Source: Zygophlyctis sp. KS116 (lineage: Eukaryota; Fungi; Chytridiomycota). From it: a stretch of 32,000 nt of DNA. The translations under genes and the position numbers were made by a program. The notes beneath the pieces are model-generated. The model saw only the letters and a list, made by a program, of their open reading frames with translations, was not told the origin of the DNA and made no database searches. Shown piece by piece: positions 1 to 31,366 of the stretch (position 1 is its first letter; each line of letters begins with the position of its first letter). The stretch spans positions 6,397-38,396 of the forward strand of contig BAAFSQ010000082.1 in NCBI GenBank assembly GCA_054661495.1. Reading direction: 5' to 3'.

Positions 1-2847
1 TGAGAAGCTTCAGAAGATACGGGAGGATTGAAGAAAGTAGGAGCATGACGGCTCTCCACCCAATTCTCATTTGCAAGATAACGTAAAGGTTTCGTATCAC
101 GAGCATTACCTCCGGTAAGAGCCATCAATGCAATAAAGTCTTCAGCAGATATTTTGAATAACGGTTCTTCTGCGACTAGCCATTTGACTCCCTCAGTACA
201 TGGAGGAGTAGTTAAAGATCCGATGTATTTGTAAAACGTCGGTACTTCTTTAAGTTCAAGAACGAATTCATCATAATTTGGTAAAAATGGATGATGGCCA
301 TGAACGGGAATATCCACAGCATGACTAACTAGTTCAGCTATAAATTCAGAGGAGAATTCAGCCAATTCGACAAAAGCACCTATAACTGCAAGGTGATTCC
401 CCAGTTTATGAACAAAATGAACTTCTGCAACGAATTCTCTTCCTTCGACTCTATGTTCAGAAGGAGTATGAATATGCCACTGAAGCAAATTGAAGGCTCC
501 TTCAGGGCGAATATATTTTCCAGTTACTTTGTTAGGAACAAACTTAATCACATCCCCTAAATGCTTTAGTTCCCCAGAAGTATTAGGATATATCAGCCTA
601 GGCAATGCACCATGGTTCTCCAAAACTCCATGAATTTCTTCCATTTCACGAGATTCAACTAATCATTAACAAGTTGTATATATTACAGTTTATCGGAGTT
701 TGATACATTCCATTACATTGAGGAGCAGTAAGTCCCCAAAAGAGAGGACCTTCAAATCCTTCATAAAAAACTTCGTGTGATTGCTCTGCTGAGTGTTGCT
801 CCTTATGATGATCAACGTGAGGATTGAAAATTTCTAGTCCTTTTCTTTGAGAAACCCAGTCATAATCTGCATTATTTTTCAGAGGAAGGGTATCACGTGC
901 ATTAAAACCAATTCTTTCCAAAAACATTTTTATGTGTTCTGGAGAAATAGTAAAAATAGGTTCTTCGGCAATTAGCCACTTAACACCTTCGGTACAAGGA
1001 GGTGTTGTCAATGATCCAACGTATTTAAAATATTTAGGACTTTCTTTGAATTTTTTTACAACTTCGTCGTATATTGGATGAAAGTGCACATGGTCACCTT
1101 TCGTCATATTCAGACCAACTTCAAGAGCTTGAGCTAAGAATTCATCTGTCTTATCCGCAATCTGGACAAAGCCTCCTAAAACAGCCAATGAGTTATCAAG
1201 CTTATGGACAAAATGAATTTCTCCGGGAAAGTCTCTTCCCTCTACTCTATGTTCTGAAGGTAAATGAATATGCCACTGAATCAACTGATGAATACCGTCA
1301 GTTCGATATAACAAGCCTTGGTCTGCAGCAGTTGTATTGACTACAAACTTTATGGTGTCACCAATATGCTTTAGTTCACCTTCAGCATTTGGATAAAAAA
1401 TGTGCGGCAAAAGGCCTTTATTCTCGACAAGGCCACCAATCGCTTTAAAATCTGCCGATTCTGGCTCTATATCAATTGGAGTTTGACGATTTCCGGCACA
1501 TGCAGGATAATTAATTGACCATCTTTCCGGCCCATATAATCCATTATATTCCCAATCAGTTGATACATTGTAGCCCACACCTAAAGGTGGATTGTAGAAC
1601 TCTTGTCCTTTTCGATGTTGGGTCCAGTTTACATCTTCCGCAAAATGTAGAGGCTGAGTTTCTCGGGAATTAAATCCCCACTTCTCCATCATATGTTTGG
1701 CATCATCCGGTGAAACTGTATAGATTGGCTCTGAAGCAATTAGCCAACGAACGCCTTCCTAAAAGTGAATATTAACAAACGTACAGTACATGGCGGGGTA
1801 GTTAAGGACCCGACATAACGATAAAATTTGGGGGATGATTTCAAGGCACCAATTGTTTCTGTATAATTGGGAGTAAACGAAGCATATTGACCGTAATTTA
1901 AAGGAGCCATTGCCTTGATCATATTACTCAGGATCGAGCTAGTAACATTTCCTATTTCAATAAATCCTCCAATAACAGCCAATTCTTTTCCTAGCTGATG
2001 AACGACTACAATTAATATAAATGAAAAAAGTACAATGAATCTCAGCGACATAATCTCGTCCTTCAACTCGATGCTCAGATGGTGTATGAATATGCCATTG
2101 AATCATATTATACTGTCCATCATTATGGGTATAAGTAGCATCTAATTTGCTGGGGAAGAACTTCACAACATCTCCAACATGTTTAAGTTTACCGGCAGAG
2201 TTAGGGTATGATATTTGAGGTAAAAAGCCATTATTATTAAGGACTCCGTGAATTTCTTCTGAAAAATGAGAACCCTCTTCAGGCATAACTTAAAATTATT
2301 AAATAGAAAGCATACTGTCTATTGGAGTTTGGTATTTTCCTTTACATTGCGGGAAACTTATTCCCCAACGTTGAGGACCTTCAATCCCTTCATATCCCCA
2401 TGGTTGACCATGTTTACAATAAGGAGATTGCAAGAAAATTTGCAATAGCTTACTGTTGATCCAAGCTCTTTTTGCAACTTTTCCGGCTGATTTAGATGTA
2501 TTATATGTTTTAGCAGCGGCAATCGCATCTTCTGCCAGCTTGCTTGAGGAAAATACATTTTCATCTATTGGTGTTATTAATAATTTTAATACATAAACGA
2601 AGTGCATATGATTTATGAGCTGGACACTCTTGGGCAAATTGGGAAGAATTCGATAATTTCAACTGATCCAAAAAGTCTCCTAATTGTGAATTTGGAATAA
2701 ATTACTTGCTTCATGCATTACGCGTTGATATCTCCATACTCGGCGTGCTACGACTTTAGCTTCATATTCAGTTGAATTAGTTCGATTTTGAGCTGCAGCG
2801 GTAGCTATTAGCAATCCAAGAATATAGATTGCCTTTGAGAGCAACAT
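1..2847 (-). CDS. Secreted multidomain alpha-carbonic anhydrase (CA-1; at least 3 tandem CA domains; 3' end runs off the window)
   Basis: ATG 2847 gives signal peptide MLLSKAIYILGLLIATAAA. Hand-spliced GT-AG introns 2680-2705, ~2565-2592, 2289-2315, 2006-2033, 1759-1784 and 659-686 give one frame. Each of three domains has Q[ST]PI[DN], QWHIH..SEH, E[IV]HFVH and GSLTTPPCTEGV.W. No stop before position 1. Confidence 0.9.
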
Positions 2848-2857
2848 AATTTATTGT

Positions 2858-2913
2858 ACGCGAGTAAATCAACGCGTAAATGGGCGCGTTCAATGTGACG
2901 TAATTGATCCTTG
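2858..2913. promoter_or_regulatory. CA-1 proximal promoter module: three CGCG boxes plus TGACGTAATTGATCCTT
   Basis: ACGCG 2858, ACGCGT 2872, GCGCGT 2884, TGACGTAA 2896-2903; the same architecture occurs upstream of all four CA genes. Confidence 0.65.
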
Positions 2914-2996
2914 TTTACTTTTACTTAAAGGTAATCATCCACCTCTCAAATGAACTGCAACAAACTTTGGGAAGAAAAGATCATTTATTTCAAGAC

Positions 2997-3941
2997 TTAA
3001 GACATGTAATAATCTGATTTTCGATTAATAGCCCAGTTAGGATCAGCTGGCATATACAGTGGCATGGTATTTCTGTAATTTGCAATAAGCTTCGATTTTA
3101 AGATATTAAAGTCAGCTACAGAGATTGTCAATAATGCATCGTCTGGAGATAAAACATGCCACTTAACGCCTTCCTATCTAATCAAACTTGTTAATATTAC
3201 AGTGCATGGGGGTGTCGTAAGAGATCCGGTATAACGATATATTTTTTTGGCCTTTTTAAATAAGGGTTGGATTTCCGAATAGTCTGGTTTATAGCTAACA
3301 TATGCCTCATGAGCAAGATTTTTTCCAGCCTTATATTAGGTAATCATATTTTTACATTAATCAACTGAGCAACAAATGGTGAAGAGACAGAGCCAACTTG
3401 GATCATGATTCCAATAACAGCCAAAGCAGTTGCATTTCTTTTTTGGTGAACAACTATTACTAAGATCAAAAATACTATTACAGTGAATCTCGGCAGCATA
3501 TGCTACTTTATGAATTCGATGTTCAGATAAGGAATGGATATGGAACTGAATCATATTGTAAACTCCATCTGGGCGAGTAAAAATGCCATCGTTTCCAGCA
3601 GACCCTGGAATATATTTCCAGGTATCGACAATATTTTTCAATTTACCTCCAGTAGTTGCGTTATAATTTGTTTCTGGCTTTGTTCCGGCAGCATTATCAA
3701 AGATTCCACTGATATTTGTTGCGAATGCAGCTTCCTCTGGATCGACTATGAACAATTATATTTCAAAGAAAATACTATTGATGGGGGACTGATATAATCC
3801 TTGGCACACACCTTCCTGTTCAAATCCCCATCGGGCCGGTCCAGGCAATCCTAGATAATTAAGTTATATCTATTTACCATTGTAAAGATCATCGGCAGAA
3901 ACATAAGTAAAAAGAAAAAGAGCAAAAGATAAGGAGAACAT
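2997..3941 (-). CDS. Secreted single-domain alpha-carbonic anhydrase (CA-2)
   Basis: MFSLSFALFLFTYVSA-DDLYNGLPGPARWG; QSPIN, QFHIHSLSEH, EIHFVH, GSLTTPPCTEGVKW; five short GT-AG introns (e.g. 3851-3877, 3746-3775); ends RKSDYYMS* with TAA at 2997-2999. Confidence 0.9.
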
Positions 3942-3961
3942 TATAAAACTGACTACTCTAA

Positions 3962-4005
3962 CCGCGACGCGAATAAGAAGCGCGTTGAGATGACGTAACA
4001 GATCC
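3962..4005. promoter_or_regulatory. CA-2 proximal promoter module
   Basis: CCGCG 3962, ACGCG 3967, CGCGT 3981, TGACGTAAcaGATCC from 3991, 50 nt from the ATG. Confidence 0.65.
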
Positions 4006-4061
4006 CCAAATTCAAGTCTCAAAGAGAAATTAAAATTTTAGTAAAAGAATTTACTTCGAAT

Positions 4062-5013
4062 TTAAGCGTAATAATCCGACTTTCGGTTTGTGGCCCAATT
4101 ACTGTCAGATACATAGTAAAGTGGCTGAGTCATTCTAGAATTGAATGGCATGACGTTTTTCAACGATTTATAGTCATCAGGGGAAATTGTCAAGAATACT
4201 GAAGAGGCAACATGCCACTTTACGCCCTCCTAATTTTTAATGTAAAACTTATACAGTGCATGGAGGAGTAGTTAGTGATCCGGTATATCTAAAGATTTTT
4301 GGGCTGGCTTTCAATCCTGAAATTACTGAAGAGTAATTGGGAGAAAAACTGGCGTAGGCTAATGGAGCCAAGTCTTTTCCTGCCTAAAATCAATAATTTT
4401 GTTGAATACATTAATAAAAGCAGATGTAAATGGATCGGTAACGTTAGCAAAATCGACAAACACTCCGATAACCGCAAGTTCACTTCCTCCTTGTTTTTTA
4501 TGAACAACTTTTAAATTAAAATATAAATACTTTTTACAGTGGAATTCTGCTGCAAAAGATCTGCCATCAATTCGATGCTCTGATGGAGAATGGATATGGA
4601 ACTGGATCATGTCATAAACTCCATCGGGTCTTGTGAAGTTTCCATCTGGTATAGTCACACTTCCGGCTGGATAAGTAGGGTAGTATTTTAGTTCCTCTCC
4701 TAAATTCTTGAGTTTTCCAGTGCCAGTTGCAGACCAGGCGACATTTGGAAAACTTCCATTGTTGGTCATGATCCCATTCAAAGTAGTACCGAAATGAGTG
4801 TCAGCTAATTCGACTACAGTTAAAGATTAAATATGTACAATTGATTGGGGATTGCAATCTGCCTAGGCATTGATTGGAACCGTATTTTTTTTCCTGTCCC
4901 CAACGAGCTGGGCCATATAATCCTTTCTAATTAAAATTAATGCGTGTACCATTATAAAGATCATCTGCATGGACACAGCTTAAAAGTAGCAAAATAGAAG
5001 TTAAAGATATCAT
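4062..5013 (-). CDS. Secreted single-domain alpha-carbonic anhydrase (CA-3)
   Basis: MISLTSILLLLSCVHA-DDLYNGLYGPARWG; QSPIN, QFHIHSPSEH, EFHFVH, GSLTTPPCTEGVKW; short introns at the same positions as CA-2; ends RKSDYYA* with TAA at 4062-4064. Confidence 0.9.
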
Positions 5014-5039
5014 ACTAGGTTCTTTCAGTAAGAGTTGAT

Positions 5040-5100
5040 ACGCGACTAAGCGCGCATAACGCGACGCGTTTAATGCTACCTGTGACGTAATTGATCCTTG
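5040..5100. promoter_or_regulatory. CA-3 proximal promoter module
   Basis: Four CGCG cores (5041, 5051, 5060, 5065); TGTGACGTAATTGATCCTTG at 5081-5100 is identical to 2894-2913. Confidence 0.65.
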
Positions 5101-5191
5101 CCTTCAACATGCACTGCTATGAATTCTTTAAGGTCATGATTTACTGATAAAATATATTCCAGATTCAGGAAAAAAAGAATTTTATTCTTAT

Positions 5192-6128
5192 TTAGGCGTA
5201 ATAATCAGACTTTCTTTTCACATTCCACTGTTGATCACCAACATAATAAAGAGGCTTTGTTAATCTAGCATTGAATGGCATAACCTTCTTCAATGCATTA
5301 TAATCACTGGGGGATATCTTTAAAAAAACATCTGAAGCAACATGCCATCTGACTCCCTCCTAAAATATAAAACTTGAAAAATTACCCAGCATGGTGGAGT
5401 TGTCAATGATCCCATGTAGCGATAGATTTGTTTACTGGCTTTTAACCCACTTATTACAGTGGAATAACCAGGCGTAAAAGATACATTAGCATGTTTAGCC
5501 AAGTTTTTTCCAGCCTATTCTTTAAAACCAAAGCATTCTTACATTAACAAAGGCAGCAGTGAATGGGTCTGACTGGCTGTCAAGATCCACAAATGCTCCA
5601 ATAACTGCAAGTTCACTTCCTCCTTGTTTTTTATGAACAACTTCTTGGTTAATCACTATCAATTTTACAGTGGAATTCGGCTGCAAAAGATCTGCCATTA
5701 ACACGATGCTCTGATGGAGAGTGGATGTGGAATTGTATCAAGTCATAAACTCCATCGGGTCTAGTAAAAGTGCCATCCGGAGAGCTGGGGTAATATTTAA
5801 GTTCCTCGCCAAGATTCTTGAGTTTGCCGCCAGCATTTGCAGTCCAGGCAACATTTGGAAAAGTTCCATTGTTAGTCATGATTCCATTCAAAGAAGTGCT
5901 GAAATCAGCATTTTCTGTTTCAACTGATTATTAAGGATTGAAGAAACTTTTACTATTGATTGGTGATTGGTAACTACCATGACAATCGTTAGGGCCAATT
6001 CCATCTGCGAAACTCCATCGTGCAGGTCCGATTATTCCTATATAATTAATTCGAATGCATTCACCATTGTAGATGTCATCAGCGACAACACTGCTAAAGC
6101 TCAAGCCCAAGATTATTAATGAAATCAT
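5192..6128 (-). CDS. Secreted single-domain alpha-carbonic anhydrase (CA-4)
   Basis: MISLIILGLSFSSVVA-DDIYNG..GPARW; QSPIN, QFHIHSPSEH, EFHFVH, GSLTTPPCWEGVRW; conserved short introns; ends RKSDYYA* with TAA at 5192-5194. Confidence 0.9.
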
Positions 6129-6143
6129 CTCAGAAATGATATA

Positions 6144-6175
6144 ACGCGTAAAGGATCAATGACGTAATAGATAAG
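6144..6175. promoter_or_regulatory. CA-4 proximal promoter module
   Basis: ACGCGT 6144-6149; AAGGATCAATGACGTAA 6151-6167, whose reverse complement matches the CA-1/CA-3 element at 15 of 17 positions. Confidence 0.65.
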
Positions 6176-6287
6176 TATGAGTCGATTAATTTATTATATT
6201 GATCAAGATGAGTATGATGTCCTAATTTAGCAAAAAAAATGGTTTATAATGACTGGTTAGATTTTAGAATCTAGATTTTAATTGTGA

Positions 6288-7443
6288 CTAACTTACACTC
6301 AATTCAATGTCTGGAACGGTCGCAGGGGTTTGATCTTTGTTATCTTGGAGTCTATCAGTACTATTGATCAGATTCTTTTGAGCTTCTGGAGCTGGATCAG
6401 CTTTATACATCTTGATGTAGTTTAAAAAAAGTATCATTGCTGCAGCAGATACTAAAAAAAGTGCCCAAAAAAATCCAAGATAATCTGCTGTACAGCCGAT
6501 TGGAGGGGAACCAGGCTGAACATTACGAATAGCTGGGAGTGCGAATATCATACTAGTTCCTACTCCCAGTGTTGGAGGCTCAACCTTTCTTCTTCGTATA
6601 CAGAGAGTAAAAGCCAACCAAAACATGCTAAGAGAAAGCAGCCACATTAACGATGCAATAAATAAAGAGAAAAATCTTTGGGTTGGGCCTCTGTATATAT
6701 TAACTTCCACAATTAGAATTTGAAAATTATCATCAGAAGCGTCCCGTAATGTTGTCGCCATTTGCCATCCTTCTAAATTATTCATTATTGAGAGTGACAT
6801 TGGTACTTTAGAACTAGATATTTATTATAATATTATAATTACCTTTCATTTTTAAAAGTATTGGTCCAAGAGCCTGATAAAATAAAATCCGCAGAGTACT
6901 CATCAAAAGGATAAAAATTTGGATTTCCTGATTTGAAAGTAAATGTGATGTCTGGAGATGACATCATTTGATTTGATTTGAAATTCTCTGTGATTGCATC
7001 AAAATTAAATGTAATCTATAAATAAATTCTCCATAATCATACCTGTCCATTCGGTGTCCGATCAAGACCATCTAGATTATCTCTCATGTTACCCCTTGGA
7101 AAAAGTCCAAAATGAACTCTATATGTAAGTAATTTTGTATCCAGACTTGTTAGATTTCCATAAATCGCTAATCCCTTGCATTAGATCTATACTAAATTAC
7201 AGTAAAATTGTCCGGTATATCCCAATTTTTAATTCGATTGATTGACGTAAAAGTCCCAATTCCTAAATTGCTTTGCTTCCCATAAGCAACAAGAATTGAT
7301 AATATAGTTGTCAGCATTAAAAATCCCAAAACGATTACTAAACTCTTACTGAATTTCTTAATCTTTGGAGTATTAAATTCATTACTGATCGCCGCTAGAT
7401 TTTCTTCACTAAATCTTATATATTTATTTCTAAAAGCATTCAT
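6288..7443 (-). CDS. DUF4436-type membrane protein with Pro-loop pentameric ligand-gated ion channel-like motifs
   Basis: Introns 7175-7200, 7016-7042 and 6814-6842 join ORFs 7192..7443 and 6288..6800. The protein has an N-terminal TM, then SLDTKLLTYRV, NFYPFDEY, NIYR, and three hydrophobic helices with MIFALPAIRNVQPGSPPIGCTAD (DUF4436-like signature, recognised from memory). Confidence 0.8.
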
Positions 7444-9646: not shown

Positions 9647-9756
9647 AAATATTAATAATATTCAAAAAGATCTTATCGGTGAATTACCTGATAACAATGA
9701 AACTGATATACGTAATGCATCTCACGTCATCCCTTGTTTACAATTATTTAGAGGAA

Positions 9757-30684: not shown

Positions 30685-30823
30685 CTGACCCACAATTCCA
30701 CACTAGCCCACACTGACCCACTGTATTAACCCACGCTAACCCACGCTAACCCACGCTAACCCATACTGAGGGAACCACACTGGGAACCACACTGGGAACC
30801 ACACTAGCCCACACCAGCCAACA
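30685..30823. repeat. C/A-rich degenerate tandem array (TAACCCACGC x3, GGGAACCACACT x3 and variants) in a divergent promoter
   Basis: 10-mers at 30727-30756, 12-mers at 30770-30805, flanked by CTAGCCCACA/CTGACCCACA variants. Confidence 0.9.
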
Positions 30824-30868
30824 GTCTCAAAGTGCGACGTCAAGTACAGACTAAACAGCAGTAGTAAA

Positions 30869-31366
30869 ATGGATTTGAGCGGTTACAATTCTCAGGATTC
30901 ACAAGAGAATGAACAAGATCAGACTGTAGAAATGAGAGATTTGGAGCCTCAAGAAATTAGAGATTTGGAAGAAATTCAACAATCGATTGCATGGAATAAA
31001 TATATTTCTCTAGAGTCATTTACAGTCAAAAACGTTGTTGGGCAAGTAGATGAATTTCAGTTGAAATCTATTCAAAAGTTGGCTAGTCTAAGAGCTAAAG
31101 GATTGCGATTTAATGATCAATTAGTAAATACAAAGGCTTTTAAAAATCCTGGAATCATGGAGAAAATGTTGGAGTATCATAATGTAAATTCTCATGGGAG
31201 TTTTATTTTGGTCGATGACTCTTTTGAAAAAGTATATACAGAATTGCAATCTTTTATTTCTAATGCTAATGCTAATGCATCGTCTAAACCAGTAAAGGAA
31301 AGTAAGAAATCTATAGAGTTTGTAAAATCAAGTCATAAATCATATGATAAAAGAAGAAGGATTTGA
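30869..31366 (+). CDS. SAP30-binding protein / HCNGP-like
   Basis: Starts MDLSGYNS; contains GLRFNDQLVNTKAFKNPGIMEKMLEY..GS, resembling the HCNGP domain motif F[RK]NP.I.EK. Confidence 0.75.
   Translation: MDLSGYNSQDSQENEQDQTVEMRDLEPQEIRDLEEIQQSIAWNKYISLESFTVKNVVGQVDEFQLKSIQKLASLRAKGLRFNDQLVNTKAFKNPGIMEKMLEYHNVNSHGSFILVDDSFEKVYTELQSFISNANANASSKPVKESKKSIEFVKSSHKSYDKRRRI

Follow-up and report, generated by a model that had tools for sequence, protein, structure and literature searches.

The stretch of DNA analysed here, 32,000 nucleotides (nt) from Zygophlyctis sp. KS116 (C82:6397–38396 in an assembly of 12.7 Mb and 1175 contigs; hereafter the window), contains four tandem α-carbonic anhydrase (CA) genes of family PF00194, CA-1 to CA-4, all on the minus strand, and each of them is preceded by the same compact arrangement of short sequence words, which is the subject of this report. 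The N-termini of the four proteins are signal-peptide-like, so that the enzymes are putatively secreted; CA-1 is a multi-domain gene that extends beyond the window. At the nucleotide level CA-3 is 86% identical to CA-4 and 72% identical to CA-2, in agreement with a first-pass annotation, made from the sequence alone, which had named CA-4 as the closest coding paralog of CA-3. CA-1, CA-2 and CA-3 are transcribed and spliced, as seen in lake metatranscriptome contigs that skip introns of 26–28 nt (2565–2592, 2679–2704, 3329–3354 and 4383–4408). Such small introns are unusual for a fungus, and searches with the CA proteins were run exon by exon. A scan of positions 2300–6500 against Rfam detected no family. 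A fifth α-CA gene, encoding a Cys-rich N-terminal part, is located on contig C232.

The DNA of the window has also been recovered in freshwater and lake metagenomes. The best named relatives of its conserved M14 peptidase are chytrid proteins (44–48% identity), on which basis it seems reasonable to regard this uncultured lineage as an early-diverging fungus. At the downstream end of the array, CA-1 and a convergent choline-transporter-like gene stop 26 nt apart (C82:4870–4896, L038); because only 26 nt separate them, the 3′ ends of the two genes must overlap or be extremely short.

The module upstream of the four genes

Read on the sense strand, the module of CA-1 to CA-3 consists of the word (A)AGGATC, two unspecified nucleotides and the octamer TTACGTCA (TGACGTAA on the forward strand), followed after 6–14 nt by a first box of the form (A/T)ACGCG(C/T). 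Each CA promoter contains between one and four CGCG boxes clustered close to the start, those beyond the first often in the form CGCGACGCG. CA-4 is arranged differently: here TTACGTCA-TT-GATCC is followed by TTT-ACGCGT, and the ATG comes 31 nt past the core. The asymmetric core has one direction in all four genes, and in CA-4 the GGATC word alone is mirrored across it. The features are the following.

2848–2910, minus strand: putative promoter module of CA-1, with CGCG at 2859–2862, 2873–2876 (ACGCGT at 2872–2877) and 2885–2888; core TGACGTAA at 2896–2903 (sense TTACGTCA); GATCC at 2906–2910; A of the ATG at 2847; kept in the related contigs L119, L020 and L152.
3942–4005, minus strand: putative promoter module of CA-2, with CGCGACGCG at 3963–3971; CGCG at 3981–3984; core at 3991–3998; GATCC at 4001–4005; A of the ATG at 3941.
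5014–5097, minus strand: putative promoter module of CA-3, with CGCG at 5041, 5051, 5060 and 5065 (CGCGACGCG at 5060–5068); core at 5083–5090; GATCC at 5093–5097; A of the ATG at 5013; the stretch from the boxes to the ATG contains a word resembling TGAAAGAA.
6129–6167, minus strand: putative promoter module of CA-4, mirror form, with ACGCGT at 6144–6149; GGATC at 6153–6157, between box and core; core at 6160–6167; A of the ATG at 6128; the mirror form is also found in L020, L152 and L119.
7243–7250, plus strand: a fifth TGACGTAA, outside the module and inside the open reading frame (ORF) of a DUF4436-like gene, without GATCC and without CGCG; absent from the equivalent place in L020.

These words are far from evenly spread over the window. 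The octamer TGACGTAA occurs five times (at 2896, 3991, 5083, 6160 and 7243) against 0.56 expected, a number reached in none of 100 shuffles, and the longer TGACGTAANNGAT four times against 0.01 expected. The four promoter copies end 48, 49, 69 and 31 nt from the ATGs of CA-1 to CA-4, respectively, which are the 49, 50, 70 and 32 nt of the first-pass annotation when counted from the first base. Its count by eye of the CGCG words was also exact: 11 of the 19 in the window fall within the four core–ATG spacers (about 197 nt in all) and 8 elsewhere, while ACGCGT is present four times against 0.79 expected. CA-1 and CA-3 do share an exact 20-mer, at 2894 and 5081. The claim that every core is followed two nucleotides later by GAT holds for CA-1 to CA-3, where the word is GATCC, but fails for CA-4, whose GGATC is placed opposite; here a GAT does follow the core, but by coincidence, since it is absent from this place in related species.

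The octamer, which is present in all four CA promoters of the window and in all orthologs, has the central ACGT of the 8-bp cAMP response element (CRE), the site of ATF/CREB proteins. One of its halves, GTCA (= TGAC), is canonical, while the other, TTAC, is of the type associated with PAR, CEBP or Yap proteins, so that TTACGTCA is a hybrid site and not the perfect palindrome TGACGTCA. In several species an additional word resembling TGAAAGAA is located between the CGCG boxes and the ATG (window, about 5020–5035, minus strand; L037:1468–1478; L120:531–540; L156, about 410–420), a possible initiator or start-site element.

Conservation in related species

The module is retained, in fixed direction and position, in related species. 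The environmental contig L020 (13.8 kb) is syntenic with the window and carries the methyltransferase, steroid dehydrogenase-like and DUF4436 genes, four CA genes and the choline transporter gene; its CA domains are about 62% identical in amino acids to those of the window. The octamer TTACGTCA occurs exactly four times in these 13.8 kb, once per CA promoter, 37–62 nt before the ATG. GGATC stands at the same offset, except that it is one base closer in CA-1, the CGCG boxes follow, and the CA-4 promoter keeps its mirror form. The same pattern was found in L152, which belongs to the same clade but to a third species, and in L119, from a near strain in another lake. The direction of the core is constant over 12 or more CA promoters of the window and its relatives, and each set of orthologs keeps its own spacing between core and first box (7/7/7 nt for CA-1, 6/5/5 for CA-2, 14/9/9 for CA-3 and 11/11/11 for CA-4).

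Comparison of the window with L020 showed that all 52 of the specified motif letters, 13 in each promoter and all likewise kept in L152, are identical, as are 42 of the 44 letters of the CGCG words, as compared with 291 of the 514 remaining spacer letters (57%, in an alignment chosen for maximum identity) and 32 of the 78 four-fold degenerate sites (41%). The letters of the module are therefore the same across species while neutral sites are near saturation, which argues for selection on a cis-element. The module is under purifying selection and is not the product of recent copying or gene conversion, in line with the view of the first-pass annotation, which had favoured selection over recent copying. 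Among strains, 10 variants were found in the spacers and none of them affects the motif or a CGCG core, although with 1.65 expected there this is not significant.

A reading without any function for these words must nevertheless be weighed, namely that they are leftovers of tandem duplication or gene conversion, or signals for the 3′ ends of the genes upstream. The spacers, of about 120–180 nt, are short, each has to accommodate a 3′ end and a promoter, and the four genes are paralogous, all of which would suit such an origin. Yet the module has been kept across species in which four-fold sites retain only 41% identity, and the rest of the spacers is not common to the paralogs, whose longest other shared words within the genome are of 8–10 nt. 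Furthermore, no motif follows CA-1, in front of the closely convergent choline-transporter-like gene, the CA-4 copy stands after a non-CA gene, and the same architecture is found before unrelated genes on other contigs. This reading is consequently highly improbable; both the duplication-relic and the 3′-end-signal versions were rejected as contradicted by the cross-species comparison.

The module appears to be older than the split of the compared species and to have been kept through the tandem duplications in every copy, and for this reason it would co-regulate the CA array. It is, then, a real and selected compact composite promoter module, through which the four α-CA genes are very probably co-regulated.

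More distant relatives help to order its parts. Before the ATG, L120 and L156 have a pair of CGCG words together with the word TGAAAG, but no TTACGTCA. The fifth α-CA gene likewise has four CGCG words 25–65 nt before its ATG (C232:5422–5456; L037:1423–1457) and lacks TTACGTCA. Because they are kept in L120, in L156 and in the C232 gene, the CGCG boxes are the deepest CA-linked feature. Octamer and GGATC are a conserved addition in two clades, and the octamer core is the strong variant of a promoter word that is itself commoner. Scanning metagenomes with a single CA domain gave no relative; a scan with the CA alignment was dominated by bacterial α-CAs and yielded a single short relative without a promoter.

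Occurrence elsewhere in the genome

Across the assembly, expectations were derived from composition; a reversed-pattern control overestimates chance for words containing CpG (234 occurrences of TGACGTAA versus 909 for the control). The 15-mer GGATC-NN-TKACGTMA is rare, with 9 matches in 12.7 Mb where about 0.6 are expected, and 4 of these are at the CA array; likewise, 5 of the 234 copies of TGACGTAA fall within 4.4 kb at the array. When the spacing between GGATC and TKACGTMA was allowed to vary from 0 to 5, 11 matches were obtained. The 2-bp spacing is itself a feature, since 9 of these 11 have it. The composite is, however, not confined to the array. Its five other matches have the same direction and lie 57–75 nt before an ORF-opening ATG: on C38, where ACGCGT boxes intervene, before the gene of a giant GT2 glycosyltransferase that has a GPS motif; on C482, also with ACGCGT, before an uncharacterised 498-amino-acid protein; on C107, at a divergent START/formin pair; and on two short contigs. 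In the giant membrane protein of C38 (C38:21830–28600, L035), an EGF-like word and a GT2 domain occur together with a GPS-like motif that precedes the last transmembrane segment; a paralog lies directly upstream, and another copy of the promoter, on C220, shares the word AGCAAATCACGAATCGCG.

The looser combinations are more widespread. TKACGTMA within 30 nt of CGCG was found at about 40 loci, among them the upstream region of actin, which contains TGACGTCA together with CGCG. Stretches of about 40 nt with three CGCG words, here called dense clusters, number about 27, of which four precede CA genes (CA-1, CA-2, CA-3 and the C232 gene), and three of the 17 copies of CGCGACGCG in the genome are before CA genes. 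Three β-CA (NCE103-type) loci are absent from the lists of composite matches and of TKACGTMA matches near CGCG, a lone TGACGTCA near two of them being possible.

The octamer might also be considered a strong version of a word that serves basal transcription throughout this lineage, that is, ACGTCA in sense orientation about 15–70 nt before the ATG, with control specific to the CA genes exerted through CGCG and/or GGATC. Background was assessed in 72 kb not chosen by motif, comprising 44 ORF starts: sense-strand ACGTCA was present within 80 nt of 3 of these 44 unrelated starts, as compared with 0.9% of random 80-mers, and antisense ACGTCA before none. In the window, ACGTCA at 9724–9729 and 30837–30842 lies 32–34 nt upstream of two non-CA ATGs, as the first-pass annotation had cautioned. 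These observations suggest that ACGTCA serves this genome generally as a word of proximal promoters. The uniform direction of the core in the CA promoters would fit this view, and so would the CGCG boxes, the part that the C232 gene and the most distant relatives have retained. On the other hand, the full octamer was found before none of the 44 starts, which admittedly form a small sample, and it is rare genome-wide; moreover, the eight octamer letters and GGATC are invariant across species, beyond the needs of a loose core word. A merely basal role of the octamer may thus be entertained as a tentative possibility.

Some further repeated words were recorded. Sense-strand ACGTCA was seen 13–70 nt before unrelated ATGs (window 9724 and 30837; L031). 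A word of the type TKACGTMA-TTGAGATAAGAAA recurs at C167:21086, C340:1266, C573:3824, C236:8788, C484:4740 and C112:29670, and at C167 and C236 it adjoins CGCGACGCG, as in the CA promoters. Short tandem repeats with units of about 10–12 nt occupy window positions 30700–30825, immediately before the gene that starts at 30869; a tandem array of the 11-nt unit CGCGAAACGCA is located at C119:3182–3270, and the word CGCGCACACGCGGCACACACGCG is repeated on C89, C145 and C204.

Candidate factors, the CO2 question and comparison with known systems

The assembly encodes proteins that could read both kinds of site. Two basic leucine zipper (bZIP) proteins have a basic region of the ATF/CREB/Jun type (N-x2-A-A/S-x2-C-R) with the Cys-Arg signature: that of C639 has the basic region NRIAARKCR and JunD and c-Jun as best PDB matches, and that of C268, which is ATF-2/CREB-like, has NRVSASRCR and ATF-2 as best match. 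CEBP/PAR-like, Yap-like and Gcn4-like bZIP genes are encoded as well, together with four or five KilA-N/APSES genes. Comparison toward Cst6/Rca1, carried out without a reference yeast sequence, recovered generic bZIP_1/bZIP_2 domains and nothing closer. No match was found for CG-1 (PF03859, CAMTA), a family for which the control genomes were uninformative, and none for E2F; these negatives mean little because the assembly is fragmented.

Each tandem secreted α-CA gene is probably driven by a compact composite promoter located 30–110 bp upstream of its ATG. The directional CRE-like octamer TTACGTCA, with its TTAC and GTCA half-sites, is most likely bound by a dimer of bZIP proteins, perhaps a heterodimer in which an ATF/Jun-type subunit is paired with one of PAR/CEBP or Yap type; the fixed polarity of the hybrid suggests either such a heterodimer or overlap with a directional core word. 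GGATC, 2 bp outside the octamer (1 bp in CA-1 of one clade) and on either side of it in mirror symmetry, may serve a partner protein as its site or provide an extended contact. The one to four (A/T)ACGCG(T/C) boxes, often CGCGACGCG and beginning 5–14 bp downstream of the octamer, resemble the MluI cell-cycle box (MCB) and would most likely be read by an APSES/KilA-N factor. A bZIP dimer and an APSES-type protein are thus plausible as the factors. The kinds of element that seem to be combined here, CRE-like and MCB-like, are known ones; what appears unusual is the mirror placement of GGATC and the fixed polarity.

Several points weigh against this model. The RNA contigs end short of the spacers, so that the module could lie partly inside the 5′ untranslated region. 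The within-genome counts are not independent, because the four promoters are paralogous, and the genome-wide promoter background rests on the 72-kb sample. Genes other than those for CA also carry the composite. Finally, CA expression as such might not require the octamer, since L120, L156 and the C232 gene keep CGCG boxes only.

The CGCG boxes could alternatively place the array under stage or cell-cycle control. They would then be MCB sites or sites of the cell-cycle box that depends on Swi4/6 (SCB), read by an MBF/SBF-like APSES factor, and the genes would be switched on at one stage of the life cycle, for example in the growing sporangium or at zoospore release. ACGCGT and the CGCGAA-type words fit MCB and SCB (PMC4862756), as the first-pass annotation had stated for the ACGCG core, forms such as ACGCGAA(A) occur in other CGCG clusters of the genome, and KilA-N genes are present where CG-1 gave no match. 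However, among the roughly 27 triple clusters, the only ones considered in this comparison, none is at an MCM2–7 or RNR1 locus, the MCM10-like gene of the window has no CGCG near its start, and secreted CAs would be atypical as G1/S genes. Because the dense clusters are not at MCM or RNR1 genes, the classical MBF reading of the boxes is not supported, and stage control in general appears unlikely.

The first-pass annotation had proposed a CO2 regulon, in which an ATF/CREB bZIP protein, related to Cst6/Rca1 or similar to it in action, acts on the octamer to turn on the secreted α-CAs at low CO2. Its precedent was correctly cited: in Saccharomyces cerevisiae, Cst6 induces NCE103 in air via TGACGTCA at −285, a site needed for the induction (PMC3257301), and the Cst6 motif determined by ChIP-exo is GTGACGT (PMC4959655). 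In a diatom, according to secondary citations, TGACGT/C elements of the β-CA gene PtCA1 are CO2/cAMP-responsive and are targets of a CREB/ATF-like bZIP protein (as cited in PMC7464044; bioRxiv 10.1101/2023.09.20.558591). The conserved CRE-type core before all four CAs and the presence of ATF-2-like and Jun-like bZIP proteins would be in keeping with such a regulon. Nevertheless, the three β-CA loci do not have the module and the fifth α-CA gene lacks the octamer, while the identical 15-mer precedes the GT2/GPS membrane protein, the 498-amino-acid protein and the START/formin pair, and TGACGTCA with CGCG precedes actin. The targets in the array are α-CAs (PF00194), whereas an NCE103-type β-CA would be expected of a Cst6/Rca1 regulon; the bZIP proteins would be candidate regulators, and their link to CO2 is hypothetical. 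The yeast site is itself distal and is absent from the NCE103 promoter of Candida albicans (PMC3257301), and since it is not conserved even there, common descent of the CA wiring is unlikely. What stands of the original interpretation is a shared and selected module; the β-CA loci without it and the composite before unrelated genes speak against the remainder, and a CO2 regulon in this sense seems rather unlikely. That the module responds to CO2 at all lies somewhere between unlikely and distinctly unlikely. Distinctly unlikely, too, is its fuller form as a CO2/bicarbonate (or pH) response element, in which a bZIP heterodimer on TTACGTCA, a partner on GGATC and an APSES protein on CGCG would induce the secreted α-CAs when inorganic carbon is scarce.

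To our knowledge, almost nothing is known of the promoter grammar of chytrid-like fungi, above all of uncultured ones. The present module, compact and testable at about 60 bp, was delineated solely by comparing environmental contigs; its direction is fixed, its partner word is placed in mirror image, and its box spacings are kept in each ortholog. It provides ready-made probes for finding the factors, could serve chytrid genetics as a short candidate for a regulated promoter, and allows the recurrence of CRE-type CA control across eukaryotes to be asked concretely. If the signal were CO2 or pH, the set of secreted CAs of this lake fungus, which may be a parasite, would be linked to the carbon chemistry at its surface.

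No described counterpart was found for the GGATC partner word and its mirror placement, but the other parts of the module recall several known systems. With fungal MBF/SBF targets it shares several ACGCGT/CGCGAA-type boxes within about 100 bp of the start and the presence of APSES genes, the CGCG core being what the APSES wing reads (PMC4862756); it differs in that the genes encode secreted enzymes and not G1/S functions, and in that the boxes are tied to a putative bZIP site at a fixed short distance. At the level of sequence, it also resembles the composite sites of bZIP heterodimers such as ATF-2/c-Jun (PDB 1t2k), with an asymmetric CRE-like octamer of fixed polarity beside a putative partner site. 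Like the Cst6/Rca1–NCE103 pair, it places a CRE-type, ACGT-centred site of bZIP type upstream of a CA gene, CA-1 and CA-3 reading GTGACGTAA as compared with GTGACGT. In contrast, secreted α-CAs are concerned here and a cytosolic β-CA in yeast, the β-CA loci of this genome being without the module, and the site is a directional TTAC/GTCA hybrid 31–69 nt from the ATG, coupled to GGATC and CGCG, where that of yeast is at −285. The diatom PtCA1 and PtCA2 promoters have CRE-like words as well, the CO2/cAMP-responsive elements (TGACGT/C, PtbZIP11), which are recognized by a CREB/ATF-like bZIP protein at defined distances from the minimal promoter (as cited in PMC7464044; bioRxiv 10.1101/2023.09.20.558591). 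They comprise two or three dispersed hexamers without a GGATC or CGCG partner, and they control β-CAs in an unrelated lineage. Should the CO2 response prove true, the array described here would be a third independent case of CRE-type CA control after yeast Cst6–NCE103 and diatom PtbZIP11–PtCA1, involving a different CA class and an early-diverging fungus.

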